A stretch of 64,000 nt of DNA from Phaeosaccion multiseriatum (GCA_965112735.1 OZ218961.1:1550001-1614000), one strand, 5' to 3'. Shown: positions 26,403 through 62,158, counted from the stretch's first letter. Made by a program: numbers and translations. Notes: generated from the letters alone by a model not told the origin.

Positions 26403-27775
26403 TGTTGCCCCTACAGCCTCATATTCATTGCCTTAGTACGTGTAACTGTCACCATGCCCATATGACATCTTACGTGGCACAATGAGGTGGCACACAGCCC
26501 ACCGGGAGTAGTAGTCTGTGGCGCTCCCTCACTCTTAGCTTATCCACCCTAAAGCTAAAGGAGACTCGGTTCTTTACTAGAGCTGAGGCAAGGCCTCCAA
26601 ACTTTACAACCTTGCACCCATCTCTTCAAATATTGGCTCACTTTCCGACTTGCTAGCGATAGCGGGATTGGCTACAATAAAGCTTTATTTGAGAATTGCC
26701 AAAACTCAGGAAACTCTCAGCTCTCGGTCTCTGCATTCGGGAGACCTCTCAGCCTCAGCATTTCTGATCTAGAGTCGAACAGCTCGACAGCCGGACCACC
26801 TCTGATCCTCAGCTTTGCGGAATTCAGCATCAGCATGGCGAACAACAAGAACAAGGGGAAGGGCAAGGCTAAGGAGGCTGAGGCGGTGCAGGACGTGGCT
26901 GACTCAGATGATGTCGCGGGGGCAGCAGATGCAGCATCCGAGGCGAACGACGAGGCAGCAGCTTCCGGTACCGACGAGGAGAATGGCAGCAGCAGTAGCA
27001 GCAGTGGCTCGGACAGCGAGGAGGAGTCTCAGCGTATGCCCGCGACAGCCAGCTCAGTGGCCATCTTCTCTCTTACTGCTCCCAACTTTCCATCTGGGAA
27101 GGTTACGGAGAAGGCTCTTATTGCTTTCTTCAAGCAGTATGAGACTTACCTTCGGCGCTACAACGCGATTGTAGGTTCAAAGCCTGACCTTACGACTCTT
27201 GAGGTGCTCTTGCCTACGCACTACCTTACGTCACTTGGCGCTCAGCTCGGTAAAGCTACCTCAGCTATTACTCACGAGTTTCTTTACAAGCACCTTCAGC
27301 AGCTGGTAGAGCCTGAGGCCGGCTCCTGTTCGGACCATGGCAATGCCCTACTGAAGGACCTCAAGAGCAAGCTCTATCTGCCACCGGATACTCAGAATCC
27401 CGTGGGCTCTCTCAATCAGCAGATGCACGGTCTCTTGGAGAAGCATGGCCAGACTCGAGTCTTCTTCAAGGAGGACAACACTCAGGTCAGCACGGAGTCT
27501 TGCCAAGTTCTGTGCAATGCTCTGCTTCAAGCGTGCAATCGCCCTCAGGGGCTGAAGGGGTACCTCACTAGGTACTTCACTCTTCACAAGAATCTTCTGA
27601 AGACCTACGTGCCCTTTCTCCAGCAACTGACCCTCATGGTGGATCAGTACTTGCCCATCTACCGGTGCATCCAGCAAGACACTTCTAATGGGGCTGTCGC
27701 TCTGCCCTCTCTTGAGGAGATACAGCGATTGGTCATCACTGGTGGGGGCAAGAAGCCAGCTGGCGGCGGTAGGCG

Positions 27776-27823
<48 letters not shown>

Positions 27824-30800
27824 GAAGCGCGACGCTCCCGCCTCTGCGGATTCTCGGGCAACTGCCCCCCCTCTGAAGAAGCCGAAGAAGCAAGGACGTG
27901 AGTCCAAGGCTCGGGCTTGCTTCAAGTGTGGCAACTCTGATCACACGGTCTATACTTGCCCGCAGCTCAAGAACAAAGCGGAGCGCATGAAGGTTATGAG
28001 CGACCGCAACCTGCCTTGGAACCCTCCCAAGAACTATGAGGTCAGTACTCTGACCACTGCTGATGACTTACTCTCGCACTCTCCCACTGATGGAACAATC
28101 TCTCTCTTTTCTTCCTCTCCTGCTTCTTTGCATGCTCTTACGCATCAAACAGGACAACTGAAGAAGCGCTCTCTCGAGTGCTTAGTCGACACCGGTGCGG
28201 AGACCTTTTGCCTCCTTCCCAGGCCTGTGGCGGACGAGATGGTAGCAGACGGAATGGATGTCTCCATTCGCGCTCTTCCTAAGCCGGTGCAGCTGCAGCC
28301 TTTTGGATGCAGCACCTCACAAGTCATCACGCATGAGCTCAGCAACTTTCACTTTCACATTCACACGGACGCGGGTCCTCTCTCTTCTGTCGCACTTCCA
28401 TCTCTCACTGCATTGCTCTTTGAGCCGCGCGAGGATGAGGCCCCTCTCTTCTACCTAGGGAAAGGGCTGGCCCAACAGTTGGGTCTCGCGCTGCCCCGAG
28501 AGCAGCTTCGACAGCAGGCGGAGAAGCAAGCCGCTGTGGCTGGTTCGGAAGTGCCCTTTGAACTGCGCAACTCCACTCCCACTGATGCGTCTTCTGCAAC
28601 GGTGCGCGTGAGTTCGTTGTTACAAGCGGGTGCTTCTCTTGCTTCCTTGCCTGAGCAGTATATAGGCGACAACGCTAACTTTTCTATCGATCTCTGGGAC
28701 TGCTCTTCTGATGATGTGTATGCTTCGCAATACACCTCTGACGAAGTCTTCCACGTAGCTTCCGCCACCTTTACTGCTCGCAGTGAAGTTGGCACCTCTA
28801 ATAATGAACCATTGGCCCGCTACGATGATCCTCTCCCTGAGGTGTCTGATTCTCCCGTCTTACCGGAAACTCAAATCAAAGAAGCTCTGCTCCCCATTGC
28901 TCAATCAGCAGTAGGCTTCTCCGACACCGCAGCTCTCTACGAGGTCCTTACCTCACACCCGGAAGTATGGCGAGGCAAAGCGCTCTTGCATGACCCTCCT
29001 GCCAAGGTCGACCCCATGGTCATTCGCCTCAAGGACGGAGCGGAGCCCATCTGCCAATTGCCCATCTACCAATCCGGTGCCCGTCGTGACTTTCTTCGAG
29101 ACTTCACGGACGAGCTCTCCAAGTTCGGATATCACTATCCAAACCCTCAGGCCGTCTGGGCCAGCCGCGCTTTCTGTATCCAGAAGCCCGGCAAGCCTGG
29201 ACAGTTCAGGCAGGTAGCTGACTACCAAGAGGTCAACCTTCGCACTCTTCGCTCCCGCTTTCCCATGCCCAATCTCTCTGAGATCAGTGCCAAGATGCGC
29301 GGAGCACGCTTCTTCTGTGAGCTTGACCTTGCCAACATGTTCTGGCAGCTGCCCCTCGATCTCTCCAGCCAAGAGATCCTCACCTACTGTACCCCTGACG
29401 GGAAGTTTACTCCCACGCGTGTGACTCAAGGCATCCTCAATGCCAGTGAGTTTGCACAGAGCACTCTAGCTAAGTGCCTCTCTGAACATTTCGGCACCAA
29501 CCTTGTTACCTGGATCGACAACATCACCATCTGGGCCCACACGGAGGAAGAGTTCCGCTCCATTCTTCAGTCTGTGCTCGATGCACTCGCCAAGGCCGGT
29601 TTCAAGCTCGGGCTCTCGGGTGTATCCATCGGCAACTCGCAAAAGTTCTGCGGGAAGATCTATGATGGCGACGGCGTCAAACATGACCCTGTCAAGATCC
29701 AAGGTCTCCTCGACCTCGAGGAGCCCAAGAACGGTGCTGAGTTGATTCAATTCGTCGCCGCTGCTGGCTGGATGCGAGACTGCATCCCACGCTTTGCAGA
29801 GCTCGTCGCTCCTCTGCAAGAGCTCAACCAAACCGTCTTCTCCGCAGCTGGCAACCGCAAGCAGAGACGTCACCCTGACGCCACTGCCGCTCCTACTCCT
29901 CGCACCAAGCGTGTCGCTCGCTCCGTCTCCCTCTCTTCGGTGGGGTGGGGCCCTGAGCACTCCAAAGCCTTTCAAGCTCTGAAAGACGCTCTGGCAGATC
30001 AAGTCAAGCTTGCTCATCCTGACCCTGACAAGGCTCGCTGTGTCTTTCCTGATGCCAGTGATCTCCATTGGGGGAATGTGGTGACGCAAGTGCCCATTGA
30101 GGACCTCAGCAAGCCCATCGCCGAACAGCGCCATGAGCCTCTTGCCTTCCTCAGCGGTAGCTTTGCCGGAGCTCAGCTCAACTACGCCACCATTGACAAG
30201 GAAGCCTTTGCTATCCTCCAGTCCTTTGAACGCCTGCCTTGGCTGATGTCTGGTGTGCACCTCTTCATCTACACTGATCACCGCAATTTGCAATACTGCT
30301 TCAGGCCCAGTAGCATCATCAGTGACGTACACAAGCCAGCACGCGAGCGATTGCAACGCTGGTCTGTGTTCCTCTCGGGCTTTGATTATGAAATCGCCCA
30401 CCTTAGTGGCGAGCTGAACGTGTGGGGTGACATGACCTCTCGCTTCCGCTCAGTCCCAGGCTCTGCTACAAAGCCTCTTGATCCTCCGGAAGACCACACT
30501 GTACGCGTGAGTGCCCTCCAACGCACCTTCTCTCCAGGATCAGTGCACGACTCCATGGACAGTGACTTTGAGTGGCCCTCTCTCGCGGAGATTCGCTCTT
30601 CTCAAGCGGCTGCCCAAGGCACGCTCACTCTCGAAGCGCTTGCAGCTCAGCAGCACCTTGCTTCTTTGGAGCATGATGCCAACTTCGACGCCATTGTGGT
30701 ACCTCAATCGCCGTCTTCACGTCCTCTGTGGATACCCAATGACGACATTGACCTACAAGTCCGACTCTCTGTCATTGCACATCAAGGATCGGCAGGGCAT

Positions 30801-32602
30801 CGCGCTGCCGACACCACTCTCTCCGTTCTCTCGGAACGATTCCACTGGCACACCATTGGTGCCGACCTGACTCGCTTTGTTGACCTCTGCCTCCACTGCC
30901 TCACCAACTCCCATGGGCATCGCATACCTCGCCCTCTTCGCGGTGCGGTCCACCCTACCAAGCCCAATCAGATGATTCATTTCGACTTCGTCCACATGCA
31001 TGACTTGGGCTGCACCTCCTTGCCATACCTGTTGGTCATCCAAGATGCCTTCAGTGGTTACACAATGCTCAACGAATGCGCTTCCACCACTGCCGACGCA
31101 GCTGTCGGTGGATTGATGCGCTGGTTCAGCACATTCGGAGTAGTGAGCAAGTGGCAGAGTGATCGAGGCAGTCACTTCCTCAACCATGTGATGAAGCGCC
31201 TAGCGACTGAGCTTCGCGCTAAACATCGCTTCTCGGCTCCATACTCTGCTTGGAGTAATGGTCTCGCTGAACGAGCTGTACGCACTGTCGTTTCAGTCTA
31301 CCGCTCTCTCCTCTCTGAGTTTCGCATTGACGCGGACGACTACAATCTGATCACACCTCTGGTCCAAGCTGCCATCAACACCACGATCAGCTCGACCCGC
31401 AAAGAGACTCCACTCTTTCTGCACACTGGCCTACGTTCGACGACTCCACTTGATATCGTCTTGCAACAGGGCGACAGCTTCGATGTTGACTTCCAATCTT
31501 CGCCGCCAACTCTTGAACAGCTCAACCACTATGGTGCTCAGCTGCAAGCGGTTCTTGAAGAGAGACACGAACGGGTTGCTGCTCAACTTGAGCGCTCGCG
31601 GGCGACGGCTCGCGACCGTCACAATCGTCGTCTGGACACTACTCGTCTTGGACATCAACACCGCAAGGAGCTGGCTCTCTCGGCTGCCCTCAACTACGAA
31701 GGCCTCTACATGCCGGGCATCTATGTCCTTGTCGCTTCCAACAGCCGCTACTCCAAGCTCTCTGGAGTGTGGCAAGGCCCTTATAAAGTGCTGGAGGAGA
31801 TTGACACTCTGGTCTACAAAGTGCAACACCTTGTCTCGAAGCAAACCTCTGAAGTGCACGCTTGTCGCTTGCGCTACTACGCTGACCAGCATCTCAATGT
31901 CAGTACTGAGCTACTTAAGCAGATCTCACACGACTCAGCCTCCTGGGTCGTCTCCGCCTTCAAGGACCTACAACGTCCCTCTCAAGGCGCTCCCTGGCAG
32001 GTTCACACCTCCTGGAAGGGCTTCAATGCCACCGACGATACTTGGGAACCTTTGACAGTCATGAATGATGACGTTCCTGCTCTTTTAGAGCAATTTCTCT
32101 CCTCTTTCCCTCGTCGCTCTTTGGCGGAGGATGCTAAGCGCTTCCTTCGGTCTCGCGGCCCCTCGTCACGCCGACGCCCGCGAGCAGGCCGCCGATAAGG
32201 AAACCCTTCGGGAACCCTTTTTGGTTACTTTTATTCATATGAACATGTTCTCTCTCTCTCTCATCTTCTCTTTTAGCATTTAGTTTAGTCACGCTCTCGT
32301 TAGTCGAGCTTCTCTCTCGAGGGGGAAGTGTTGCCCCTACAGCCTCATATTCATTGCCTTAGTACGTGTAACTGTCACCATGCCCATATGACATCTTACG
32401 TGGCACAATGAGGTGGCACACAGCCCACCGGGAGTAGTAGTCTGTGGCGCTCCCTCACTCTTAGCTTATCCACCCTAAAGCTAAAGGAGACTCGGTTCTT
32501 TACTAGAGCTGAGGCAAGGCCTCCAAACTTTACAACCTTGCACCCATCTCTTCAAATATTGGCTCACTTTCCGACTTGCTAGCGATAGCGGGATTGGCTA
32601 CA
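26403..32602 (+). mobile_element. Element B: structurally intact, young Ty3/Gypsy chromovirus
   Basis: Identical 274-bp LTRs 26403-26676 and 32329-32602 (TG...CA); TSD CCTC; PPT GAGGGGGAAG 32319-32328; single uninterrupted ORF. Confidence 0.97.
26835..32198 (+). CDS. Element B Gag-Pol polyprotein (CCHC knuckle, PR, RT, RH, IN, chromodomain), 1787 aa
   Basis: CFKCGNSDHTVYTC; LVDTG; ELDLANMFWQ, VTQG, WIDN; FPDAS, DKEAFAI, TDHRNL; HQGSAGH..CLHC, SDRGSHF, SNGLAER, WQGPY; WQVHTSWKGFNATDDTWEP. Confidence 0.95.
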
Positions 32603-32993
32603 CCTCCCCCCCTGTTCCCCCACGCCGACGCTATCCTCACGCGCTGCGGTCGTGGTCCCCAGGGCTGCTGGCGAAGCAGCCCCGGGGCACCGTCAGCCTT
32701 CGAACTTGAACCCGTCCTGCGCCGCCAGAGTGCCCGCCACCATTGCTGCTACGGCTTCAGACATGTCGGACTCCTGGTGCAGCGCTCTGACCGCCTGCCG
32801 CCGCTGCACGCGACTCACAATGCCGAGCAGCTCCTCACGCGTAGCCGGGATGGCGTTGCATTCTATCCAGCCATGGCCGGCGCGGCGACAAGTCATGCAG
32901 TTAAATGGGGCATTGCCGTTGCCACGCTGCTTGACCGAGCCGTGGAACAGCAAGGGCCGCTGCTGGGTGGGCGTGAGCCGCGGCTGCTGCGCC

Positions 32994-33028
<35 letters not shown>

Positions 33029-36224: not shown

Positions 36225-37479
36225 AGACCCCTCACAAAAAGAGGGCGACTCCAGGGACTCCTCCCCCCTACGCAACGCCTCCCGCACACGGTCCAAAGCC
36301 CCAGGGCTGGCAGTGACCTCCGCAGGAGGAGCAGCAGCTTCCGATACCACCGACCCCACGTCCGCAGCACCACCATCAGCTCCACCGCCCTCAGCGTCAC
36401 TCGTAGCGCCCTCCGCCGATGCAAGACTCAGGAAGTCCATCCCCTCCTCCTCAGCCATTGCCACCCTAGCAGCGTGGCGACGCAGGAAGTCCATCCCCTC
36501 CTCAGCCAGTGCCACCCTAGCAAGCCTAAAGCCGTCAACGGCCTAACGCTGGGCAGCTGGAAGCAAAGCTCAAGCCAACACAATAAATCAGTCTCAAAGC
36601 TGGATCTCAGACCTGTGTCTTTCGGGTCTTCCGGGTTGTCGAAACTACCGACAGCTAGCCTCAAAGCCAAGCTAGAGCAGAGCAGAAGCTGAAGCAAGCA
36701 CCCGGAAGCCAGCCCACACGCAGGCTGCGCTTCCTTTCTTTATTACTGATTTACCGTCTAGTTGGCCCGTTTTCCGGCCGTTACACTACTGATTGGGTCC
36801 CCAAGGGACCCCAACTAGGCCACTTCTAACACGCAAGCACAGCGAACTACAAGCCCTGTTCTCTCCCATTGCCCACGTTCACACCGCTCACGAACCCCAA
36901 CGCCGAAAAATCCATCACCGCTTCTCTGCATCACAGGCAGGCCCCAAATTCCGCTCCATAGCTGTTGTGAGCGACCAAACGTCATGCCTCCGCCGTCGAT
37001 TACAGATAAGTGGCCACTGTGGAAAGTCGTGCTTAGACCTCCACGAAACGGACTAGACACACAGATAAGGTAGCAGCACCCCAAAGCTAGCCTGACAGCC
37101 GGCCTTGTATCTATTAGCTTATCTATGCACTGTCCTAAACGACCACCTACAGGAGGATAGTGAGAAACGGGCACCGTTTCTCACTGCGTTGCCTAGGCCT
37201 GGGCCACTGACATACGACTGACTTTCCACATCCCCGTCAGCCATCCCTGCACTTCTAACACTCCCCTGACAAGACTGTTGCGTGTCCCCACGCAACTCAA
37301 GCGTTTTCACCTACTGAAGCTCGACTGTAGCCACCAAAAAAACCGGATGAGAAATATGCAAAACTCACCCACCAGTGTGTGACGTGGCACTCCACAGGTC
37401 ACCCTGCCACACACCTGCCACGGCAGGGTGAGAAAGCCCAAGGCCTCAAACTCACCCTCCGTGGCTGCGCACGGCTGCG

Positions 37480-38811
37480 CTAGCGCTGGCTCGTCCCCAC
37501 CGTCACCTGCTGTCCCAGCGTTGCAACCGTACGAGGCACTCCATGCGCGGCCTGCTCCGTCGCCAGCAGCTGGGCCGCCTTCTCGTCCATCAGCTTCTGC
37601 AGCCGCGCCTGCGCCGCTTCCACTTGCTGCATCCGATCCTTCAGAGAGAGAGGAGGCCGGTCCAACCAGGCCGGACGATCCGCTGCAATCTCCTGCTGCC
37701 ACCGGCGCTGCCTTGCCGGATCACACTTCATCGCGTCCATCTCCTGCTGCCACTGGCGCTCCTCCTCAAGCTGCCGCTCTGCCGGATCCCTGACCCCGTC
37801 GGGCCTTACCTTGCGCTTCTTCGACCGCCGCCCCCTCCTCTTTGGCCGCGCACCAACTTCGGTAGTGGAACCAAGACCACTGAGAACACCATTCACCCGC
37901 ACTACAGGCTGAGCCACAGCCCGCAGTGCGTCCTCCCGCTCTTGCCAGTCCCGCACTTGCTGTGCCCGCGTGCTCTCCGCTTGAGCCTGCGTGTGTACCT
38001 CTTGCAGCTTGCGCTGAGCTTCCTCAGCCAAGGCAGCTTGTTGCGCCTGCTGCCGTCTCTCTTTCTCCCCGACGCGGCGCCTCTCCACCCGCTCCTGAGC
38101 CGCACACACACGCGCCCGCTCCAACTGTTCCTCCTCCAGCCAAACAGACTCGCGCTCCTGCCGCTCCCGCTCGAGGACCGCAGCAGACACTGACCCCTCT
38201 GCAAGCGTGACGCCAGCCTGCTCTACCTGCTCCTCCTGAGCCTGCGCTTGCGCCACCCGAAGCCGAGACTGCGCCGCGGCCGCCACCGTCAGCTCTAGCG
38301 TCTGCAACTCCTTCGAGGCTCTGCGCTGTGCTGCCTGCCCTGTCGTCGTCACGGCCTTCAACAGCTGAGCAAGGACGCGCTTGTATTGCTCAGTGCGCTG
38401 CACAAGCGTCACCACCACCTGGGAAGCTGTACCCAAGCCGTACCGCTTCCCTGCATCCACCATCTTCCTCACCATGGCTCCGGTGGTCGGTTCGGTAGGG
38501 CAGCGAGAGAGACAGTGCTCCTTCTTGCAGTGAAAGCACGAAAAGACTTGCCCTGCCCCACAGTCGACCTTAGATCGTTTCTGCTTGCTGCCCGACCCCA
38601 CCTGTGCAGCAGCTACCTGCACCTCCGACTGCTGCCTTGGATCCCGACCCAATAGCTGGCCCAGTAGCACCGGAAGTGCTGCAAGGTCCATCCTGATTCC
38701 ATGCAGCTCCTCCATCAACCGATTGACCATGTCGTGATCCCCCATCGGTTCCTCCTGGGACCAGCCAGTACGCTTACTCTGTGCCAGCCGATCGCCGCGC
38801 CATGCCGGCAT
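37480..38811 (-). CDS. Gag-like zinc-knuckle/coiled-coil protein of unit P, left arm
   Basis: CFHCKKEHCLSRC knuckle; ESVWLEEEQLERARVCA resembles element A ESVWMDARGLERVRACA. Confidence 0.6.
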   Translation of the reverse strand: MPAWRGDRLAQSKRTGWSQEEPMGDHDMVNRLMEELHGIRMDLAALPVLLGQLLGRDPRQQSEVQVAAAQVGSGSKQKRSKVDCGAGQVFSCFHCKKEHCLSRCPTEPTTGAMVRKMVDAGKRYGLGTASQVVVTLVQRTEQYKRVLAQLLKAVTTTGQAAQRRASKELQTLELTVAAAAQSRLRVAQAQAQEEQVEQAGVTLAEGSVSAAVLERERQERESVWLEEEQLERARVCAAQERVERRRVGEKERRQQAQQAALAEEAQRKLQEVHTQAQAESTRAQQVRDWQEREDALRAVAQPVVRVNGVLSGLGSTTEVGARPKRRGRRSKKRKVRPDGVRDPAERQLEEERQWQQEMDAMKCDPARQRRWQQEIAADRPAWLDRPPLSLKDRMQQVEAAQARLQKLMDEKAAQLLATEQAAHGVPRTVATLGQQVTVGTSQR

Positions 38812-40523
38812 CTTCCCTCTTGCTGCGCCCCTGCAGCTGCTCCCTCCGAGCGTGCCTAATTATGCCTGATATCCGTGCCTGCTGCTGCTGCTGCCTCTGC
38901 AGCTGCTGCGGTATCCAACACCTGCTGCTGCGCCCCCTGCCTCTCCAGCCAAGCCTGCTGTGTCTCCTGCCGCTAACCTCTAAATCAGCGGTCCCCTCTG
39001 ATTAAGTATAGCGGATACCCGTGCCTCCTGCTGCTGCCCCTGCAGCTGCTGTATCCAATCCTTTGCTGCTGCCCCTGCAGCTGCGCGCCAATCCTTCCGT
39101 GCCTCCTGCTGCTGCCCCTGCAGCTGCTCCTTGCAATATCCCTAGCTACCTCTTGCTGCCGATCCACGGTAGCGCTGCTGTGCCACTCTTTCAAAGCCAA
39201 GCAATAAATTCTCCCACAAATAAATTCTCCCACCGGTTCCCAAGCAAAGCCAAGCCAAGCAAAGCTAATTAAGCTAAACGCCCCTGACGGAGCAAGCTGT
39301 GGCGTGTCCGTGCCTTGGACACTAACCAAAAACGTCCACGTGCTAGTCTAGCGCACGATGAACTCAAAGTCTCCCTCTGCTGAGCCTATTGGTCAAGTGC
39401 CAAACTGTCTTCGAGCTTTGGGGTTGTGGAAAGTCGTGCTTAGACCTCCACGAAACGGACTAGACACACAGATAAGGTAGCAGCACCCCAAAGCTAGCCT
39501 GACAGCCGGCCTTGTATCTATTAGCTTATCTATGCACTGTCCTAAACGACCACCTACAGGAGGATAGTGAGAAACGGGCACCGTTTCTCACTGCGTTGCC
39601 TAGGCCTGGGCCACTGACATACGACTGACTTTCCACATCCCCGTCAGCCATCCCTGCACTTCTAACAGCACTCCCCTGACAAGACTGTTGCGTGTCGTGT
39701 GGAAAGTCAGTCGTATGTCAGTGGCCCAGGCCTAGGCAACGCAGTGAGAAACGGTGCCCGTTTCTCACTATCCTCCTGTAGGTGGTCGTTTAGGACAGTG
39801 CATAGATAAGCTAATAGATACAAGGCCGGCTGTCAGGCTAGCTTTGGGGTGCTGCTACCTTATCTGTGTGTCTAGTCCGTTTCGTGGAGGTCTAAGCACG
39901 ACTTTCCACAACCCCAAAGCTCGAAGACAGTTTGGCACTTGACCAATAGGCTCAGCAGAGGGAGACTTTGAGTTCATCGTGCGCTAGACTAGCACGTGGA
40001 CGTTTTTGGTTAGTGTCCAAGGCACGGACACGCCACAGCTTGCTCCGTCAGGGGCGTTTAGCTTAATTAGCTTTGCTTGGCTTGGCTTTGCTTGGGAACC
40101 GGTGGGAGAATTTATTTGCGGGAGAATTTATTGCTTGGCTTTGAAAGAGTGGCACAGCAGCGCTACCGTGGATCGGCAGCAAGAGGTAGCTAGGGATATT
40201 GCAAGGAGCAGCTGCAGGGGCAGCAGCAGGAGGCACGGAAGGATTGGCGAGCAGCTGCAGGGGCAGCAGCAAAGGATTGGATACAGCAGCTGCAGGGGCA
40301 GCAGCAGGAGGCACGGGTATCCGCTATACTTAATCAGAGGGGACCGCTGATTTAGAGGTTAGCGGCAGGAGACACAGCAGGCTTGGCTGGAGAGGCAGGG
40401 GGCGCAGCAGCAGGTGTTGGATACCGCAGCAGCTGCAGAGGCAGCAGCAGCAGCAGGCACGGATATCAGGCATAATTAGGCACGCTCGGAGGGAGCAGCT
40501 GCAGGGGCGCAGCAAGAGGGAAG

Positions 40524-41798
40524 ATGCCGGCATGGCGCGGCGATCGGCTGGCACAGAGTAAGCGTACTGGCTGGTCCCAGGAGGAACCGATGGGGGATCA
40601 CGACATGGTCAATCGGTTGATGGAGGAGCTGCATGGAATCAGGATGGACCTTGCAGCACTTCCGGTGCTACTGGGCCAGCTATTGGGTCGGGATCCAAGG
40701 CAGCAGTCGGAGGTGCAGGTAGCTGCTGCACAGGTGGGGTCGGGCAGCAAGCAGAAACGATCTAAGGTCGACTGTGGGGCAGGGCAAGTCTTTTCGTGCT
40801 TTCACTGCAAGAAGGAGCACTGTCTCTCTCGCTGCCCTACCGAACCGACCACCGGAGCCATGGTGAGGAAGATGGTGGATGCAGGGAAGCGGTACGGCTT
40901 GGGTACAGCTTCCCAGGTGGTGGTGACGCTTGTGCAGCGCACTGAGCAATACAAGCGCGTCCTTGCTCAGCTGTTGAAGGCCGTGACGACGACAGGGCAG
41001 GCAGCACAGCGCAGAGCCTCGAAGGAGTTGCAGACGCTAGAGCTGACGGTGGCGGCCGCGGCGCAGTCTCGGCTTCGGGTGGCGCAAGCGCAGGCTCAGG
41101 AGGAGCAGGTAGAGCAGGCTGGCGTCACGCTTGCAGAGGGGTCAGTGTCTGCTGCGGTCCTCGAGCGGGAGCGGCAGGAGCGCGAGTCTGTTTGGCTGGA
41201 GGAGGAACAGTTGGAGCGGGCGCGTGTGTGTGCGGCTCAGGAGCGGGTGGAGAGGCGCCGCGTCGGGGAGAAAGAGAGACGGCAGCAGGCGCAACAAGCT
41301 GCCTTGGCTGAGGAAGCTCAGCGCAAGCTGCAAGAGGTACACACGCAGGCTCAAGCGGAGAGCACGCGGGCACAGCAAGTGCGGGACTGGCAAGAGCGGG
41401 AGGACGCACTGCGGGCTGTGGCTCAGCCTGTAGTGCGGGTGAATGGTGTTCTCAGTGGTCTTGGTTCCACTACCGAAGTTGGTGCGCGGCCAAAGAGGAG
41501 GGGGCGGCGGTCGAAGAAGCGCAAGGTAAGGCCCGACGGGGTCAGGGATCCGGCAGAGCGGCAGCTTGAGGAGGAGCGCCAGTGGCAGCAGGAGATTGAC
41601 GCGATGAAGTGTGATCCGGCAAGGCAGCGCCGGTGGCAGCAGGAGTTTAAAGCGAATCCTCCGGACGGGTGGGACGGGACTCCTCTCTCTCTGAAGGATC
41701 GGCTGCAGCAATTGGAAACGGAGCGGGCCGCGCAGGGAGTGCCTCGTACGGTTGCAAAGCTGGGACAGCAGGTGACGGTGGGGACGAGCCAGCGCTAG
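40524..41798 (+). CDS. Gag-like zinc-knuckle/coiled-coil protein of unit P, right arm
   Basis: Identical to the left-arm ORF except near the C-terminus (424 vs 443 aa). Confidence 0.6.
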   Translation: MPAWRGDRLAQSKRTGWSQEEPMGDHDMVNRLMEELHGIRMDLAALPVLLGQLLGRDPRQQSEVQVAAAQVGSGSKQKRSKVDCGAGQVFSCFHCKKEHCLSRCPTEPTTGAMVRKMVDAGKRYGLGTASQVVVTLVQRTEQYKRVLAQLLKAVTTTGQAAQRRASKELQTLELTVAAAAQSRLRVAQAQAQEEQVEQAGVTLAEGSVSAAVLERERQERESVWLEEEQLERARVCAAQERVERRRVGEKERRQQAQQAALAEEAQRKLQEVHTQAQAESTRAQQVRDWQEREDALRAVAQPVVRVNGVLSGLGSTTEVGARPKRRGRRSKKRKVRPDGVRDPAERQLEEERQWQQEIDAMKCDPARQRRWQQEFKANPPDGWDGTPLSLKDRLQQLETERAAQGVPRTVAKLGQQVTVGTSQR

Positions 41799-43716
41799 CG
41801 CAGTCGTGCGCAGCCACGGAGGGTGAGTTTGAGGCCTTGGGCTTTCTCACCCTGCCGTGGCAGGTGTGTGGAAGGGTGACTTGTGGAGTGCCAAGTCACA
41901 CACACACTGGTGGGTGAGTTTTGCATATTTCTCATCCGGTTTTTTGGAAGCAGCATAAAAGGTTTTGCTACAGTCGAGCTTCAGTAGGCGAAAACGCCTG
42001 AGTTGCGTTGGGACACGCAACAGTCTTGTCAGGGGAGTGTTAGAAGTGCAGGGATGGCTGACGGGGATGTGGAAAGTCAGTCGTATGTCAGTGGCCCAGG
42101 CCTAGGCAACGCAGTGAGAAACGGTGCCCGTTTCTCACTATCCTCCTGTAGGTGGTCGTTTAGGACAGTGCATAGATATGCTAATAGATACAAGGCCGGC
42201 TGTCAGGCTAGCTTTGGGGTGCTGCTACCTTATCTGTGTGTCTAGTCCGTTTCGTGGAGGTCTAAGCACGACTTTCCACACCACATTGCATAATGCCCCA
42301 ATTTCCTTCAGCACCGGTCGACGTACATCTCTGCCCACCCGTAGATGGGCACCAAAGGCTGCTGTGTTTCCCGAATTGCAAGCGCCGTACACTCCCAATG
42401 CTGCCTTCCAAATTCCAATGCCTCCCTTGCATGCTGCGCCCCTCCTGTCGCCCATTGCCTCGCTGTTTTGGCCTCAGGTTCAATATCCGCTCCACACGCA
42501 AACTCGGGACGCCAACCACCATCAAAGTGCTCTCCGGTTCCTTCCAACAGCCCGAATAGCTGCCTTCTTATCCATGCTGCCACCGTTGACGCTGTACTAA
42601 CTGCCCTGCTGTTGCCGTTTGGCCTGAGAGCCCAATTGCACCACTGCCGCCGTCCTTCTCCTCCGTGGTGCCGCCCCGCCCCCCCAACATGAAAAACACC
42701 AGAACTCCGAGCGATACTGCAGCAGGAATGCTGACCGCCACACGTACCAAGCGGAATACCCCCACGTGTAGAGAGACTGGGGCCCCAACAAATACATGGT
42801 CTCTGTTGCTGTTGCTGTAATTGGTACATGGCGCCTTGTTTCTCGAAACGGTGAAAAATCAGGGTAGGTCGTGTGGGGCCATGGTACAGCCGCTACACCG
42901 GCCCGCCTGCCGCCTTGAGACCAAAAGGAAAAGCCTCTGCTGATTTTGAAAGGGCTGTGGGAGCCGGGTGCCGAAGAAGCTGGGGCGGCGTGTGGCTGTT
43001 CCAAAAGTCGTAAATACATAAAATGCCGTGGACCACACCCCCCACACCTTGGGCCACGGGAGAGAGGAGAGAGCGGAGAGATGAGTAGGGCGTCGGCCTC
43101 AACACCGAACGCGTATCCTACGGCGATACCAGCAAGGCAGAAAGGGCGAAGAGGGCAAAAGGCGCCGGCACGCAACACCGTGGAGGCGGTCGGCACGCAA
43201 CACCAGACACCGCTTGTCCCAAGCCATAGAGCCCCGCAACACCGGCAAAGGAAAGAAAAGAAGAGTTCCGGCACGCAACACCGTGGAGACTGTCGGCACG
43301 CAACACCAGACACAGTCTCCCTAGCTCTTCCTCCCTCTTCCACGAGGATCCCGGCTCGCAACACCAGGCGGATCCCCTTGGCCAACACAAGCGCTCTGTC
43401 CGGGCCCAGGACAAGAGGCTCGCTTTCCACCACACCAGTATCTACTCTCCTCCTGGACAGTGTGCTCCACTCTTCCTGGGCTCTGTCTCCGCCGCCTCAG
43501 TAAGTGACAGCACACGCCAAGGTCTCTCCTCTTCTGAAAAATCAAAATTCCCTGCTTCACTGACATACTGTACATCTCCCCAGAGGGGACCCCCCCCTTG
43601 GGGCGGTACCAAGCACCTACGCTGACGCTTCGCCCTGCTGGCTCCCATGTCTCCCACCCCTTCCTCGTCTCTGTTCCGCGAGAAACAAAGTTCCGTTGCT
43701 GCGCTGCTGAACAGGC

Positions 43717-46700
43717 TATGCCAAATGCCGGCTTTGGGCGTCTTTGCCGACAGATTGGGCCATTTGAGCCTATCTGAGATCCCACTTGGCGCTGTTGTGG
43801 GAATGTCGTATCTGTCTTGGGCCTATGGTGCTGAGCCAATGCCTGGACTGGGCATGTTGTGACCAGCAAACGCGTCGTTCGGGCTGTGTGTGCGCCCCAA
43901 ATGCGGGCTTTGGGCGTCTTTGCCGACAGATTGGGCCATTTGAGCCTATCTGAGATCCCACTTGGCGCTGTTGTGGCAATGTCGTATCTGTGTTGGGCCT
44001 ATGGTGCTGAGCCAATGCCTGGACTGGGCATGTTGTGACCAGCAAACGCGTCGCTCGGGCTGTGTGTGCCTACCAAATATGCCAAATGCCGGCTTTGGGC
44101 GTCTTTGCCGACAGATTGGGCCATTTGAGCCTATCTGAGATCCCACTTGGCGCTGTTGTGGCAATGTCGTATCTGTCTTGGGCCTATGGTGCTGAGCCAA
44201 TGCCTGGACTGGGCATGTTGTGACCAGCAAACGCGTCGTTCGGGCTGTGTGTGCGCCCCAAATGCCGGCTTTGGGCGTCTTTGCCGACAGATTGGGCCAT
44301 TTGTGGAGGTATGCTCACAAATGTCGTCAGTTCATAGTTTCAGTTTCTTCGTTCAGTTTCAGTTTCCTTTTAGTTCTTTCCATCTCCTAAAATATTACTT
44401 CATCTCTCGTCCTTTCGTTTTCTCACGAGTGCTCCACCTCTGGTGGATAGCGACTGACCTCCTGCTATGTGCAGGTAGGGTCTATTGCTATTGGTAGTCA
44501 TCCTTTCAGTGCACGACTCCACAATAACTAGTTATTACCGGATAGTACATTTCATACACTCTCCAATTTCAGCGGGGACCAATGTCCGTCTCGCCACTAC
44601 AACACCCGGTGGTAGGCTGTACACCACCCGCGGTAGGCTCTTCCAGCATCGAGGTCTACATCCAGCCTTTTTTCGCCGATCCCAGTCAGAGAGCGGCCGC
44701 AGTGGATCGATGCCAGCAGCAGATTGTGCAGCTCTTTTCGGCGCTGGATAAATGTGGGCAGCTCGCCGTGGTCTACAACGAGAGTGCGGACGAATGGGTA
44801 GAAGGCACAGCTTCTGTAATCAGCGGAGGCCTCGCTGCCGGCCTCAAGCCCCAACATGTTTTCCTACAAGCGGCGTACTCCACCTTTGGACCTCATTCTT
44901 CACACCTTCCAGGGCCCTCTCTTGGTGCCCAAGATCAGCTGTGCCATCACGGACAACGACATGACCAAGTTGGTTACCGTGGGCCGCGCCACCCTGAAGG
45001 AGCTCGGCATTAACATCCAAGAGGCCCTTGGTAAGGCAGCAGCGGCGCAGCACATCAAAGACGGCGCCACCGGCCCTACGCGTCAGGCGTCGGAACGTAC
45101 TGTCACCTTTCTCCGTGACCGTTACTCTCCTCACTTCTAATCTTCTTCTGTTTCCCTCGGACTCTTTCCTATACCTTCTGAGTACCAATGTGCCCTGAAA
45201 TAATTCTCTCTACCCTCTGGTGTTCCTAGACTGTTTGTGAGGCCGCTTTTTCCCTCCCCCTTGTGTGAGGCAGCTTTTCCCTCCATCTGTTCTGTTCCCA
45301 AGTCGGTGTAGCTAGGGCTAATTCTCTCTACTCTCTGGTGTTTCTGGACTGTTTGTGTGGCCGCTTTTTCCCTCCCCCTTGTGTGAGGCAGCTTTTCCCT
45401 CCATCTGTTCTGTTCCCAAGTCGGTGTAGCCAGTCTGTGTGGATTTCCCTCTTTTCCTTACTTCCTTTCCTCCTATTTGTGTTCATCTCTTTCTCTTTCC
45501 TTATCATGTCTGCGTATGCACACATGCTTTCAAAGGGGGGACTGTGGAGGTATGCTCACAAATGTCGTCAGTTCATAGTTTCAGTTTCTTCGTTCAGTTT
45601 CAGTTTCCTTTTAGTTCTTTCCATCTCCTAAAATATTACTTCATCTCTCGTCCTTTCGTTTTCTCACGAGTGCTCCACCTCTGGTGGATAGCGACTGACC
45701 TCCTGCTATGTGCAGGTAGGGTCTATTGCTATTGGTAGTCATCCTTTCAGTGCACGACTCCACACATTTGAGCCTATCTGAGATCCCACTTGGCGCTGTT
45801 GTGGCAATGTCGTATCTGTGTTGGGCCTATGGTGCTGAGCCAATGCCTGGACTGGGCATGTTGTGACCAGCAAACGCGTCGTTCGGGCTGTGTGTGCCCC
45901 CCAAATGCGGGCTTTGGGCGTCTTTGCCGACAGATTGGGCCATTTGAGCCTATCTGAGATCCCACTTGGCGCTGTTGTGGCAATGTCGTATCTGTCTTGG
46001 GCCTATGGTGCTGAGCCAATGCCTGGACTGGGCATGTTGTGACCAGCAAACGCGTCGTTCGGGCTGTGTGTGCCTACCAAATATGCCAAATGCCGGCTTT
46101 GGGCGTCTTTGCCGACAGATTGGGCCATTTGAGCCTATCTGAGATCCCACTTGGCGCTGTTGTGGCAATGTCGTATCTGTGTTGGGCCTATGGTGCTGAG
46201 CCAATGCCTGGACTGGGCATGTTGTGACCAGCAAACGCGTCGTTCGGGCTGTGTGTGCCTACCAAATGCCGGCTTTGGGCGTCTTTGCCGACAGATTGGG
46301 CCATTTGAGCCTATCTGAGATCCCACTTGGCGCTGTTGTGGCAATGTCGTATCTGTCTTGGGCCTATGGTGCTGAGCCAATGCCTGGACTGGGCATGTTG
46401 TGACCAGCAAACGCGTCGTTCGGGCTGTGTGTGCCCCCCAAATGCGGGCTTTGGGCGTCTTTGCCGACAGATTGGGCCATTTGAGCCTATCTGAGATCCC
46501 ACTTGGCGCTGTTGTGGCAATGTCGTATCTGTGTTGGGCCTATGGTGCTAAGCCAATGCCTGGACTGGGCATGTTGTGACCAGCAAACGCGTCGTTCGGG
46601 CTGTGTGTGCCTACCAAATATGCCAAATGCCGGCTTTGGGCGTCTTTGCCGACAGATTGGGCCATTTGAGCCTATCTGAGATCCCACTTGGCGCTGTTGT

Positions 46701-47212
46701 GGCAATGTCGTATCTGTCTTGGGGCTATGGTGCTGAGCCAATGCCTGGACTGGGCATGTTGTGACCAGTAAACGCGTCGTTCGGGCTGTGTGTGCCTACC
46801 AAATGCCGGCTTTGGGCGTCTTTGCCGACAGATTGGGCCATTTGAGCCTATCTGAGATCCCACTTGGCGCTGTTGTGGGAATGTCGTATCTGTCTTGGGC
46901 CTATGGTGCTGAGCCAATGCCTGGACTGGGCATGTTGTGACCAGCAAACGCGTCGTTCGGGCTGTGTGTGCGCCCCAAATGCCGGCTTTGGGCGTCTTTG
47001 CCGACAGATTGGGCCATTTGAGCCTATCTGAGATCCCACTTGGCGCTGTTGTGGCAATGTCGTATCTGTGTTGGGCCTATGGTGCTGAGCCAATGCCTGG
47101 ACTGGGCATGTTGTGACCAGCAAACGCGTCGTTCGGGCTGTGTGTGCCTACCAAATATGCCAAATGCCGGCTTTGGGCGTCTTTGCCGACAGATTGGGCC
47201 ATTTGAGCCTAT
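43717..47212. repeat. 176/185-bp satellite array (segments 43717-44301 and 45765-47212, split by element E1)
   Basis: Monomer ...ccaaatgccggctttgggcgtctttgccgacagattgggccatttgagcctatctgagatcccacttggcgctg...; repeated ORF ends at 45774, 45950, 46135, 46311, 46487, 46672, 46848. Confidence 0.97.
44302..45764 (+). mobile_element. Element E1: 1.46-kb non-autonomous LTR element
   Basis: 222-bp LTRs 44302-44523 and 45543-45764; TSD CATT; PPT AAAGGGGGGAC; internal protease-region remnant and ~120-bp direct repeat. Confidence 0.95.
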
Positions 47213-47575
47213 TGTAGCCTATCTGAAGGCAACAAAAATATCGCCCATTCAAGGGTATCGATACCCATCCAAGAAGATGTAGAGGTCCTATGGGTACACC
47301 AAGTCCACAGGAACATAGTAGATAAGAGAGCTCAGATGAGAATCGAACCCGAGAGTGGTAGAGATTTTTGTTGCCTTCAGATAGGCTACACTACCCACTT
47401 AGATTAGTATTGCGACCAAGTCCACAGGAACATAGTAGATAAGAGAGCTCAGATGAGAATCGAACCCGAGAGTGGTAGAGATTTTTGTTGCCTTCAGATA
47501 GGCTACACTACCCACTTAGATTAGTATTGCGCAATACTAATCTAAGTGGGTAGTGTAGCCTATCTGAAGGCAACA
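47213..47575. mobile_element. Structure G: 178-bp TG...CA unit with 27-bp terminal inverted repeats, a 117-bp tandem duplication and a 90-bp perfect palindrome
   Basis: tgtagcctatctgaaggcaacaaaaat (47213) ... atttttgttgccttcagataggctaca (47390); 47298-47414 = 47415-47531; palindrome 47486-47575. Confidence 0.75.
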
Positions 47576-48182
47576 GTTGTGGAGTAGGCCACTCTTTCAT
47601 GCCAAATCGGAAACCCGAGGCAATTGTTTAATATATTCTACTCTCGTTCTATCAATAAGGTTTTGACGTCTTATCTCTCCCACCAAGGAGTGGGGAGCCC
47701 ACAGACAAAGAGTGTGAGTCACAGTTAGTTAGCGCAAGTTCACCGACGCTACAATAATCGATTATTACTCAGTATTGGTGATACCAGAACTGAAGAAAGA
47801 CTCAAGAAGACCGGAGAGGCCAGGATGGCGGATTCGGCACCAATGGCGCAGTCTGCAGAGGAGCTGCGTGCGCCTCACCTTTCTGAGGTGGCAACTAAGG
47901 ACTCGGGGGCGTGGCTGGATCGCTTCACGTTGTATGAGCAACAGCATACGGCTCTCACGAGGAATTTGACACCAGAGCAGGCCCGGCGCAACCCGAAGGC
48001 TACCGTGCAATCGTGCCTAAAGCGCTCGGTAAGAATGCACATCATTAAGGAGATGTTCAGCGATGATGAGAGGACAGCCTTAGCGGCCGACGATGCAGCA
48101 ACGAGTGCAGCAGTGGAAGCCTCTTTCCTGGCAGCGATTAAACAGCTTGCGGGAAGGACAGCGGAGGCCTCACAGCGCAACC

Positions 48183-48394
48183 TGTGGAGTCTCAAAGGTG
48201 TTTGGTATGTTCGAATCCGGATTGTCGCCATTTGGGGAACTCGAGCTTCATATGAACGGCATGTCGCAGGAGGAGGATAGATAGGAAAGTGAGATAGAGA
48301 AAGGAAAGCTAATACACGCTCAACATAGGATAAGAATCCCTTTGCTTGTTGGTTGTCTGGGGTGTGTGGTCTGTTCCACATCTCAGGTGGCTCA
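48183..48394 (+). mobile_element. Solo LTR of family D inserted in F gag
   Basis: tgtggagtctcaaagg...ggtggctca; TSD AACC. Confidence 0.93.
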
Positions 48395-49776
48395 AACCCC
48401 GTGGAGCTGCAAGATGCTATAAGGAAGAGCCTAGTCATGTCCATGCTGGACAAGGAAGGTAACCACATCGACGTAGAGGAAAGGGTACAGAAACAGCTTC
48501 TTCCCCTGTATGAACTACTCGACAAAAGGGGGTTTGTGGAGGTATGCTCACAAATGTCGTCAGTTCAAAGTTTCAGTTTCTTCGTTCAGTTTCAGTTTCC
48601 TTTTAGTTCTTTCCATCTCCTAAAATATTACTTCATCTCTCGTCCTTTCGTTTTCTCACGAGTGCTCCACCTCTGGTGGATAGCGACTGACCTCCTGCTA
48701 TGTGCAGGTAGGGTCTATTGCTATTGGTAGTCATCCTTTCAGTGCACGACTCCACAATAACTAGTTATTACCGGATAGTATTTTTCCAATTTCAGCGGCG
48801 ACCAATGTCCGTCTCGCCACTACAACACCCGGTGGTAGGCTGTACACCACCCGCGGTAGGCTCTTCCAGCATCGAGGTCTACATCCAGCCTTTTTTCGCC
48901 GATCCCAGTCAGAGAGCGGCCGCAGTGGATCGATGCCAGCAGCAGATTGTGCAGCTCTTTTCGGCGCTGGATAAATGTGGGCAGCTCGCCGTGGTCTACA
49001 ACGAGAGTGCGGACGAATGGGTAGAAGGCACAGCTTCTGTAATCAGCGGAGGCCTCGCTGCCGGCCTCAAGCCCCAACATGTTTTCCTACAAGCGGCGTA
49101 CTCCACCTTTGGACCTCATTCTTCACACCTTCCAGGGCCCTCTCTTGGTGCCCAAGATCAGCTATGCCATCACGGATAACGACATGACCAAGTTGGTTAC
49201 CGTGGGCCGCGCCACCCTGAAGGAGCTCGGCATTAATATCCAAGAGGCCCTTGGTAAGGCAGCAGCGACGCAGCACATCAACGACGGCGCCACTGGCCCT
49301 CTTCGTCAGGCGTCGGCACGTACTGTCACCTTTACCCGTGACCGTTACTCCCCTCATTTCTAATCTTCTTCTGTTTCCCTCGGACTCTTTCCTATACCTT
49401 CTGAGTACCAATGTGCCCTGAAATAATTCTCCCTACCCTCTGGTGTTCCTAGACTGTTTGTGAGGCCGCTTTTTCCCTCCCCCTTGTGTGAGGCAGCTTT
49501 TCCCTCCATCTGTTCTGTTCCCAAGTCGGTGTAGCTAGGGCAAATTCTCTCTACTCTCTGGTGTTTCTGGACTGTTTGTGTGGCCGCTTTTTCCCTCCCC
49601 CTTGTGTGAGGCAGCTTTTCCCTCCATCTGTTCTGTTCCCAAGTCGGTGTAGCCAGTCTGTGTGGATTTCCCTCTTTTCCTTACTTCCTTTCCTCCTATT
49701 TGTGTTCATCTCTTTCTCTTTCCTTATCATGTCTGCGTATGCACACATGCTTTCAAAGGGGGGACTGTGGAGGTAT

Positions 49777-53965: not shown

Positions 53966-54184
53966 GTATGCTCACAAATGTCGTCAGTTCATAGTTTCAG
54001 TTTCTTCGTTCAGTTTCAGTTTCCTTTTAGTTCTTTCCATCTCCTAAAATATTACTTCATCTCTCGTCCTTTCGTTTTCTCACGAGTGCTCCACCTCTGG
54101 TGGATAGCGACTGACCTCCTGCTATGTGCAGGTAGGGTCTATTGCTATTGGTAGTCATCCTTTCAGTGCACGACTCCACAGGTT

Positions 54185-58582: not shown

Positions 58583-59134
58583 ATGTTTTGTGTGAAGTTT
58601 TTTTCCTTTCAAAAGGTTTTTCTCAATTTGGCTACTCACTCGTTTTGTTCCTCCTTCTTTTCCCTTTAGCTCAACAGGATAGTTTCCTATCAAGCTTCTA
58701 AGGGGGGACTGTGGAGTAGGCCACTCTTTCATGCCAAATCGGAAACCCGAGGCAATTGTTTAATATATTCTACTCTCGTTCTATCAATAAGGTTTTGACG
58801 TCTTATCTCTCCCACCAAGGAGTGGGGAGCCCACAGACAAAGAGTGTGAGTCACAGTTAGTTAGCGCAAGTTCACCGACGCTACAGTGTGCCTACCAAAT
58901 ATGCCAAATGCCGGCTTTGGGCGTCTTTGCCGACAGATTGGGCCATTTGAGCCTATCTGAGATCCCACTTGGCGCTGTTGTGGCAATGTCGTATCTGTCT
59001 TGGGCCTATGGTGCTGAGCCAATGCCTGGACTGGGCATGTTGTGACCAGCAAACGCGTCGTACGGGCTGTGTGTGCGCCCCAAATGCCGGCTTTGGGCGT
59101 CTTTGCCGACAGATTGGGCCATTTGAGCCTATCT

Positions 59135-62100: not shown

Positions 62101-62158
62101 GTTCCCCAAATGGCGACAATCCGGATTCGAACATACCAAACACCTTTGAGACTCCACA
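59135..62158 (-). mobile_element. Element D2: non-autonomous D-family LTR element
   Basis: LTRs 59135-59344 and 61949-62158; TSD ATCT; PBS TGGTGGAAGCTGAGGGAT (61945-61928); PPT from 59345; 3' region ~59350-60070 homologous to D1 ~53030-53750. Confidence 0.93.
61090..61540. repeat. 153-bp tandem repeat (51-aa Ala/Thr/Glu-rich unit) inside the D2 ORF 60508-61920
   Basis: gcaatttccgctg at 61214, 61367, 61520. Confidence 0.85.

Follow-up and report, generated by a model that had tools for sequence, protein, structure and literature searches.

A palindrome at the primer-binding position of a stramenopile Ty3/gypsy clade: a candidate combined site for genomic RNA dimerisation and priming

In LTR retrotransposons of the alga Phaeosaccion multiseriatum the position of the primer-binding site (PBS) is taken by a palindrome of 10-14 nt that starts on the terminal A of the 5' LTR, and the same feature is found in related families outside this genome, all sampled carriers of which form one Ty3/gypsy clade. 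We tentatively propose that the palindrome acts in cis, as an RNA element peculiar to one Ty3/gypsy clade of ochrophyte algae, oomycetes and uncultured relatives, and that it serves both dimer initiation and primer binding by pairing with a second genomic RNA. In textbooks, LTR retroelements prime reverse transcription in one of two ways, with a host tRNA or by the self-priming of Tf1. A palindrome in the place of the tRNA PBS points to a tRNA-free start of reverse transcription in this clade.

Results

The window, by which we mean the whole 64-kb stretch of DNA that was analysed, contains the following features of the elements discussed here.

26403..26676, + strand: B 5' LTR, TG...CA, 274 bp, 100% identical to 32329-32602; target-site duplication (TSD) CCTC on both sides
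26676..26689, + strand: B palindrome AATAAAGCTTTATT, from the LTR-terminal A; predicted homodimer dG -12.7, hairpin 0
26835..32198, + strand: B gag-pol ORF, 1787 aa, with RT, RNase H and integrase
32319..32328, + strand: B polypurine tract (PPT) GAGGGGGAAG
32329..32602, + strand: B 3' LTR; next to it the TSD CCTC, with no palindrome
36628..36636, - strand: element A, Tf1-type PBS ACCCGGAAG right after the 5' LTR, complementary to the LTR-internal CTTCCGGGT at 36700-36708
44302..44523, + strand: E copy 1, 5' LTR, 222 bp
44523..44536, + strand: E copy 1, palindrome AATAACTAGTTATT
45543..45764, + strand: E copy 1, 3' LTR, with the PPT AAAGGGGGGAC just before it
47578..47753, + strand: F 5' LTR, 176 bp, 100% identical to 58710-58885
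47753..47766, + strand: F palindrome AATAATCGATTATT
48535..48756, + strand: E copy 2, 5' LTR, inserted within F gag
48756..48769, + strand: E copy 2, palindrome
53966..54180, + strand: E copy 2, distal part of the 3' LTR
54126..56942, + strand: F pol ORF with RT and RNase H
56798..58582, + strand: F pol ORF with integrase and chromodomain
58710..58885, + strand: F 3' LTR, with no palindrome after it

Element A is the host of the B insertion. E is non-autonomous, with a length of 1.5 kb (copy 1, 44302-45764) and a longest ORF of 155 aa, and keeps its LTR ends, PPT and palindrome and little else; its second copy is nested inside F, and element G (49776-53965) is nested in turn in the 3' LTR of that copy, which it splits. 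The TSD of F, GGCC, was read in copy L009, and F has the sole downstream TGG, 21 nt past its LTR. Element G has a TGG-type PBS, for which a candidate complement occurs at 13 genomic loci; none of the four inspected is a tRNA gene.

The motif AATAANNNNTTATT matches the 64-kb window four times, at 26676, 44523, 47753 and 48756, where 0.01 matches are expected by chance, and four matches were reached in none of 100 shuffles; palindromes of 10 nt or longer have a background frequency of 1.2e-3 per position. At all four sites, for which the 5' LTR boundaries were verified, the first base of the palindrome is the LTR-terminal A, and the C before that A lies outside the palindrome. What follows the 3' LTRs of B, E and F is flank or TSD, never the palindrome, and TGG is absent within 20 nt of the LTR in every family checked. 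The sequence-only reading of this DNA had claimed the four palindromes, their overlap with the terminal A, their absence after the 3' LTRs, the lack of a TGG-type PBS and the occupancy of the PBS position, and in all of these it was right, the palindrome lying at the PBS position to the nucleotide. Its count of three families was too low, as there are at least five in the genome (B, B2, C, E and F) and a whole clade outside it.

Within the genome, palindrome junctions number 8 for B, at least 2 for B2, 33 for C, 10 for E and 5 for F, and most of the ten E 5' junctions that were examined genome-wide have their own readable 4-bp TSD. Beyond this genome the feature extends to about ten relatives (metagenomes and Phytophthora rubi), which brings the total to 16 families; the palindrome is perfect in 15 of them, and in the other, known from a decayed copy, it has a single mismatch. 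These families correspond to 14 distinct sequences (13 perfect, one with the single mismatch) plus repeats in L022 and L045. Palindrome length varies from 10 to 14 nt, and the start on the terminal A is found in all 14 distinct family sequences (and in L022 and L045). The closing A-T pair is present in 14 of 14 families, but the C before it is paired in only two. The domain order of B and F pol, RT-RNase H-integrase with RVT_1, together with the tree, assigns the carriers to Ty3/gypsy and not to Ty1/copia, the group of the GalEa elements discussed below. With an SH-aLRT support of 100 and a stem length of 0.74, the sampled carriers all belong to a single clade, outside which fall both the Tf1-like element A of the same window and Tf2-like elements.

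Given that a MAFFT alignment of the 16-mers had aligned on CA and not on the centre of the palindrome, base pairs were counted by script. Across the 14 families, pairs 1-5 from the centre are Watson-Crick in 69 of 70 cells, with three to four pair types at each position; at pairs 8-10, outside the palindrome, 2-4 of the 14 families have a Watson-Crick pair, as expected by chance. Families B and B2, whose pol sequences are 84% identical in 718 aligned columns (a genome search gave 82-83%), have palindromes that differ by two compensatory double changes, and the flanking LTR end still aligns. The arms are A/T-rich in most families, and the 14 sequences have no conserved base beyond the first A.

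These properties bear on whether the palindrome might act at the level of DNA, in the cDNA, through plus-strand transfer, a hairpin or cruciform, or a symmetric site for a dimeric protein. Any PBS doubles as homology for plus-strand transfer, palindromes are typical for dimeric proteins, and the A/T-rich arms would fit; nonetheless we consider such a role improbable. Fourteen different sequences with only the first A conserved argue against recognition by a protein, plus-strand transfer requires complementarity of two strands and not self-complementarity, and a stem of 4-5 A/T base pairs with a 4-nt loop is unstable. Further, an asymmetric CTTG core found in one subfamily of E is inherited, which argues that the halves are not recopied from each other every cycle.

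At the level of RNA, the predicted dG of the homodimers is -8.6 to -16.9 kcal/mol, and by this prediction the palindromes form the stable intermolecular duplex that marks a dimer site, while the monomer hairpins are unstable at about 0. A self-complementary centre, with a hairpin at about 0 versus a stable homodimer, suggests an intermolecular duplex rather than a hairpin. The predicted heterodimers of B, E and F reach only -0.2 to -1.6 kcal/mol, which would make the three cores thermodynamically orthogonal. Covarying palindromy, a duplex between molecules in preference to a hairpin and pairing specific to each family had all been put forward from the sequence of the window, and the pair counts and the B/B2 changes bear out the first, while the predicted energies favour the other two.

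The E subfamily with the CTTG core, one base off a palindrome, occupies two insertion sites with different TSDs, which shows that there is no strict need for the centre to pair perfectly; the predicted homodimer of this variant is still at -8.1 kcal/mol. The sequence-only reading had held that active relatives with non-palindromic cores would refute it.

Both textbook modes of priming were considered for these sites: in the first, 8-18 nt after U5 pair with the 3' end (TGG...) or an internal part of a host tRNA, and in the second the PBS matches, over about 9-11 nt, the complement of the start of R within the LTR. Complementarity of the Tf1 type, between the LTR body and the terminal A plus 24 nt (RNAduplex), did not exceed that of shuffles in B, B2, C, E and F, and Tf1-type self-priming was rejected for these families; element A, the positive control for this search, gave its 9-nt match. 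With no complement in the LTR and a site that is self-complementary, pairing would have to occur in trans. Genome-wide, the E 15-mer is found at element junctions and nowhere else, and the counts of the B and F 15-mers and of the C 14-mer match the element copy numbers, so that no independent gene encoding a fully complementary RNA was seen. A cellular RNA complementary to each site had been named beforehand as evidence that would tell against the palindrome as primer site; no separate locus with the B, E or F core was found in the genome. The window has no tRNA gene, and scoring with Rfam RF00005 covered organellar tRNAs only.

Conventional priming, whether a tRNA or small RNA of the host served as primer or, as in Tf1, the 5' end of the transcript, relies on known mechanisms for this position, one of which has its 9-nt match in element A of the same window, but we regard it as largely refuted and very improbable for the palindrome families. 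A perfect palindrome of 10-14 nt with a 4-nt centre cannot fit the arm of a tRNA cloverleaf, and 14 different palindromes would demand as many primers; there is, moreover, no TGG after the LTR, no non-element locus with the B, E or F palindrome was seen, and the LTR-to-PBS complementarity is no better than in shuffles.

For 12 of 13 families no downstream hairpin partner beat shuffles, nor did the elements contain, elsewhere in their length, a near copy of it such as a bipartite site of the Ty3 kind or cyclisation would call for. Searches for snap-back fossils of B, C, E and F, in which an LTR end and the palindrome would run into an inverted LTR end, found none. Public DNA unitigs laid out at the elements had neither strand-switch joints nor transcript ends, the only joint seen in them being one of LTR equivalence.

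Discussion

A palindrome after the LTR is not new in kind. The GalEa elements, Ty1/copia elements of Pezizomycotina, possess a Conserved Hairpin Site, CHSeq1, which is palindromic once the last A of the 5' LTR is counted in (Donnart et al. 2017, BMC Genomics 18:410, PMC5445492); neither a tRNA PBS nor a Tf1-type complement was found in them, and the authors left the mechanism open (PMC5445492). A second box, CHSeq2, lies 12-41 bp downstream and pairs with CHSeq1 as a hairpin with a conserved A/A mismatch (PMC5445492). The elements described here resemble GalEa in the lack of a tRNA PBS and in a palindrome that includes the LTR-final A, but they are gypsy elements of stramenopiles and not copia elements of Pezizomycotina, no second box of the CHSeq2 type was found in them, and their palindromes, at 10-14 nt, exceed those of GalEa in length and, by far, in variety of sequence. 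For this nearest precedent the published model is a hairpin site, in which the palindrome pairs in cis with a downstream box (PMC5445492); with no downstream partner above shuffles in 12 of 13 families and no near copy elsewhere in the elements, we rejected it, and it is highly doubtful here.

What we propose shares with Tf1/sushi elements independence from tRNA, the element's own RNA as primer and a short RNA duplex that adjoins U5. It differs in that the partner of the Tf1 PBS is the start of the same transcript, in cis, whereas no complementary LTR sequence was found here, and in that the carriers are a clade apart from the Tf2-like and A elements. A further likeness is to the HIV-1 DIS, MLV PAL and Ty1 PAL, leader palindromes that the account in PMC6844567 connects with genomic RNA dimerisation: in each case a self-complementary leader sequence is expected to join two genomic RNAs. 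Those palindromes, however, are usually of 6-10 nt within the loop of a hairpin, or else are located downstream of a tRNA PBS distinct from them, whereas the present one is linear and adjoins U5 to the nucleotide, and a separate PBS is absent.

The likeness raises the question of whether the palindrome is a dimerisation or packaging signal only, as the retroviral DIS/PAL, with priming by a tRNA fragment, an internal site or a protein. Retroviral and Ty1 leaders dimerise through palindromes, in the description given by PMC6844567, and second palindromes just downstream in B2, L022, L024, C6 and all three copia loci resemble a multi-site dimer linkage. Moreover, the CTTG variant of E still transposed, and a match of 8-10 nt to a tRNA fragment is conceivable, the tRNAs scored being organellar. 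Against this stand the divergence of the leaders right past the palindrome (C4 versus C6, B versus B2), with no TGG or other conserved segment there, and the failure of the search to turn up another candidate PBS. A pure dimerisation signal, moreover, has no reason to keep exact register with the end of the LTR, and would leave this register unexplained in every family. The copia elements of the genome also have a post-LTR palindrome, one base later, past the terminal A, and for those elements the argument from register fails. On balance a role in dimerisation or packaging alone seems to us rather unlikely, if a serious alternative.

Under the combined dimer-initiation and primer-binding reading, the palindrome would be under selection for self-pairing in trans: two genomic RNAs would join at this site in a duplex of 10-14 bp, the first pair of which would involve the last A of U5. 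A cut of one strand at the 3' edge of the duplex would leave a 3'-OH on a U paired to the partner's U5-terminal A, from which extension would proceed into U5-R. The R-U5 tail of the primer strand could be removed by RNase H after hybridising to the new strong-stop DNA, so that what remained would be a short RNA primer like that of Tf1. In Tf1 self-priming RNase H cuts an RNA duplex and a short RNA primer is left, and it is by analogy with this cleavage that the cut is proposed. Dimer formation in vivo, the cut and the priming are steps that we infer.

Our literature search for an earlier description in gypsy elements or stramenopiles found none. Until now the palindrome of GalEa has been a single unexplained exception; new here are a GalEa-like signature that runs through an entire, well-supported clade of Ty3/gypsy elements from a different supergroup of eukaryotes, dense compensatory variation and an exact LTR-end register, without the hairpin partner of the only published model. 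An oddity thereby becomes a testable hypothesis of priming in trans (a palindromic PBS/DIS), with many natural swap variants for experiments. LTR annotation tools that demand a tRNA PBS would mis-score the palindrome elements, and PBS silencing based on tRNA fragments could not act on them. More guardedly still, the palindromic PBS may represent a third mode of minus-strand initiation besides the host tRNA and Tf1 cis self-priming, in which one genomic RNA primes the other and which arose or spread in both Ty3/gypsy (the stramenopile clade) and Ty1/copia (GalEa and the copia elements of this alga). If this is true, dimerisation, choice of primer and family specificity would all be set by one site of 10-14 nt.

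Palindromes behind the 5' LTRs of the window

The elements of the window were reconstructed from repeats, open reading frames and flanks. A pattern search of the window with AATAANNNNTTATT returned four matches, at 26676, 44523, 47753 and 48756, against an expectation of 0.01, and four was reached by no shuffle. These are the positions at which the sequence-only reading had placed palindromes in three LTR families, designated B, E and F, and in each case the final A of the 5' LTR is the first base of the palindrome. The elements concerned are:

26403-26676 and 32329-32602, LTRs of B, 100% identical to each other
47578-47753 and 58710-58885, LTRs of F
44302-45764, E copy 1
from 48535, E copy 2, within F gag, its 3' LTR split by another element (49776-53965)

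Element B is a young, complete Ty3/gypsy element (TSD CCTC, PPT GAGGGGGAAG) in which gag-pol forms one 1787-aa ORF with RT, RNase H and integrase; F, likewise Ty3/gypsy, has an integrase of the chromodomain type, and E is non-autonomous (1.5 kb, without a long ORF). As had also been proposed, no TGG adjoins the LTR in B, E or F, and no palindrome lies 3' of their 3' LTRs, where we found a TSD or flank instead. The palindrome feature is real and robust.

E, F and G (a further window element) have inserted into satellite DNA whose units are 176 and 185 nt long, with a 537-nt higher-order period (43721-47274, 58770-59203 and 62159-62953). The segment 47298-47575 holds two identical 117-nt tandem units with a tRNA-like Pol III B-box, GGTTCGATTC (minus strand); they close with a perfect palindrome of 90 nt (47486-47575), its LTR-like termini reading TGTTGCC...GGCAACA, which abuts the 5' LTR of F. 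Two short LTR-type elements in opposite orientation, 30 nt apart, occupy 37018-42280; one LTR ends in a sequence whose reverse complement opens the other.

Distribution of the palindrome

The organism's own genome (67 Mb, 22 contigs) was searched with B pol, the matches were fetched, and LTR pairs and TSDs were defined. Families related to B were present at 82-83%, 40% and 35% pol identity. The junction of one, B2, reads ...TTACA/GAAAAGCTTTTCT and gives the 14-nt palindrome AGAAAAGCTTTTCT, and that of the abundant family C reads ...GCACA/GAACTAGTTCT and gives the 12-nt palindrome AGAACTAGTTCT, intact in 33 of 33 junctions genome-wide, the LTR bodies preceding it being of at least two highly dissimilar kinds.

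The best pol relatives beyond this genome (32-40% identity) came from metagenome contigs and oomycetes, and every contig fetched carried a palindrome from the A of ...CA, shortly 5' of gag. The sole apparent exception is L025: at its LTR-terminal A stands AGTGATAACT, in which one mismatch interrupts a 10-nt palindrome; this copy has an ORF without the integrase core, and the palindrome of its sister L042 is perfect. Two LTR copies fix the position of the LTR end in eleven families, and in the rest it is taken from ...CA.

Palindromes at individual fetched loci
L016 (Phytophthora rubi) and L022: AAAGAATTCTTT
L018: ATTACTAGTAAT
L019: (C)AGAAATTTCT(G)
L020: AATATCGATATT
L021: AGAAACGTTTCT
L023: ATTGATCAAT
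L024: (C)AAAGCGCTTT(G)
L042-44: AGTGTACACT
L045: AGAACTAGTTCT

When the trait was mapped on an RT-RNase H-integrase tree, obtained by a quick LG+G4 search rather than a careful one, all sampled carriers formed one clade (SH-aLRT 100, stem 0.74), outside which fell the Tf1-like element A of the window, Tf2-like elements and other gypsy elements. The feature is therefore much wider than the three families first noted, being clade-wide.

The genome also holds a family with a weak match to RVT_1 (34 bits) in tandem arrays of about 4.1-kb spacing on contigs C1 and C8 (e.g. C1:677678-690498), and an RT match inside a 4622-aa open frame (C10:8859-9359). Contigs C17-C22 are organellar: C17 is a mitochondrial concatemer, its repeat unit about 56 kb long and bearing nad genes, and C18-C22 are repeated assemblies of a red-type plastid, with a PSII gene, groEL and thiG. 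The best named matches of the plastid groEL are early-branching brown algae and Chrysoparadoxa (76-77%), which places the host among the ochrophyte stramenopiles.

Covariation and register

The 14 distinct sequences of the families were aligned on their centres, and base pairs were tallied outward. Pairs 1 to 5 were Watson-Crick in 14/14, 13/14, 14/14, 14/14 and 14/14, each position showing three or four types of pair; pairs 6 (11/14) and 7 (4/14) reflect the 12- and 14-nt versions, and pairs 8-10 (2-4/14) are at chance. The LTR-terminal A with T is always the outermost conserved pair, the C before it being paired in two families only. The pol sequences of B and B2 are 84% identical in the columns aligned for the tree (genome search gave 82-83%), and their LTR ends can be aligned; their palindromes are two compensatory double changes apart. 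The background of palindromes of at least 10 nt was 1.2e-3 per position in all DNA examined, the elements themselves included. As judged by comparison of sequences, selection has kept the site perfectly self-complementary across its centre; it occurs once in the RNA, and its register with the U5 end is exact.

In several gypsy families a further palindrome, unrelated to the first, lies within 3-20 nt of it (L001 1045-1056, TCTTTCGAAAGA; L022 4626-4637, TGTCTATAGACA; L024 148-157, CAGAGCTCTG; L006 about 1370, AAAGCTTT).

Mobile relatives with a non-palindromic core would speak against the proposal, and one such case was found, its deviation being a single central mismatch. Two E copies share the core CTTG (AATAACTTGTTATT) and one LTR substitution:

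L014 5152-6615, minus strand, TSD ACTG (+ coordinates)
L030 341-1802, TSD GTTC

Given that their TSDs differ, this palindrome-imperfect subfamily has been mobile; one central mismatch is thus tolerated, and the two halves of the palindrome are not regenerated one from the other in each cycle.

Other elements and known systems

Element A, about 20 kb with nested insertions including B, has its LTRs at 36637-36831 and 16562-16728, and its pol also has a 3'-5' exonuclease domain (PF01612). It bears a Tf1-type signature, ACCCGGAAG directly 3' of the LTR and the LTR-internal CTTCCGGGT, with 9 nt complementary (36628-36636 and 36700-36708, minus strand). Element G (49776-53965 and 59134-62159, minus strand), which interrupts the 3' LTR of E copy 2, has a TGG-type site, ACTTGGTGGAAGCTGAGGG, 3 nt past its LTR. 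The genome contains 13 occurrences of the complement of this site, and none of the four loci fetched was a tRNA gene.

Copia elements of the same genome (L037, G000:C7:122000-131000, minus strand; L041; L038) have perfect 12-nt palindromes behind the 5' LTR, ACA/CGACAATTGTCG and ACA/CGACAGCTGTCG, which begin one base past the terminal A, and a second palindrome about 10 nt further 3' that covaries between copies (CTAATGCGCATTAG versus CTAGTGATCACTAG). No TGG PBS was seen at the copia loci examined.

The nearest published parallel is the Conserved Hairpin Site of the GalEa copia elements of fungi. These lack a PBS and carry a 9-bp box, a palindrome if the last A of the 5' LTR is included, with a second, complementary box downstream; the authors weighed both a Tf1 and a DIS model without settling on a mechanism (PMC5445492). 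The feature type thus has one published, unexplained precedent. GalEa and the present clade are alike in the palindromic box including the terminal A and in the lack of a PBS, whereas the downstream complementary box is found in GalEa only, and superfamily and host group both differ. In the literature outside subscription journals we found no description of the palindrome in gypsy elements or in stramenopiles.

Pairing partners and a model for priming

Within the element, complementarity of the LTR body to the palindrome site was not above that of shuffles in B, B2, C, E or F, no downstream pairing partner surpassed shuffles in 12 of 13 families, and there was no near copy of the palindrome elsewhere. 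A separate cellular RNA was the other candidate partner. Because a palindrome is its own complement, any fully complementary RNA encoded by the genome would show up in genome-wide pattern searches, and none was seen: all E palindrome sites are element junctions, and the counts for B, F and C equal their copy numbers.

The argument that a self-complementary core is useless to a short hairpin is borne out by the predicted energies, about 0 kcal/mol for the monomer hairpin versus -8.6 to -16.9 kcal/mol for the homodimer duplex. B, E and F have arms in common and differ in their cores, and predicted heterodimers among them (-0.2 to -1.6 kcal/mol, versus -12.7 to -13.2 for the homodimers) agree with the suggestion that the core acts as a family-specific pairing code. 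Given that E and F have nothing in common beyond the palindrome arms and 21 nt at the PPT/U3 junction, E probably uses F proteins but keeps its own core.

Intermolecular pairing at the palindrome, as first proposed, is well supported by this comparative evidence. Two genomic RNAs would pair there, and from its register the palindrome would be a functional PBS, the 3'-terminal U of the primer lying on the LTR-terminal A and the first deoxynucleotide being placed opposite C. In Tf1, an RNase H cut is involved in self-priming, and an analogous cut may occur here at the 3' edge of the duplex. We further infer that the primer strand could lose its R-U5 tail to RNase H, since that tail is complementary to the new strong-stop DNA, leaving a short RNA primer. 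Priming by the partner RNA is plausible, if putative.
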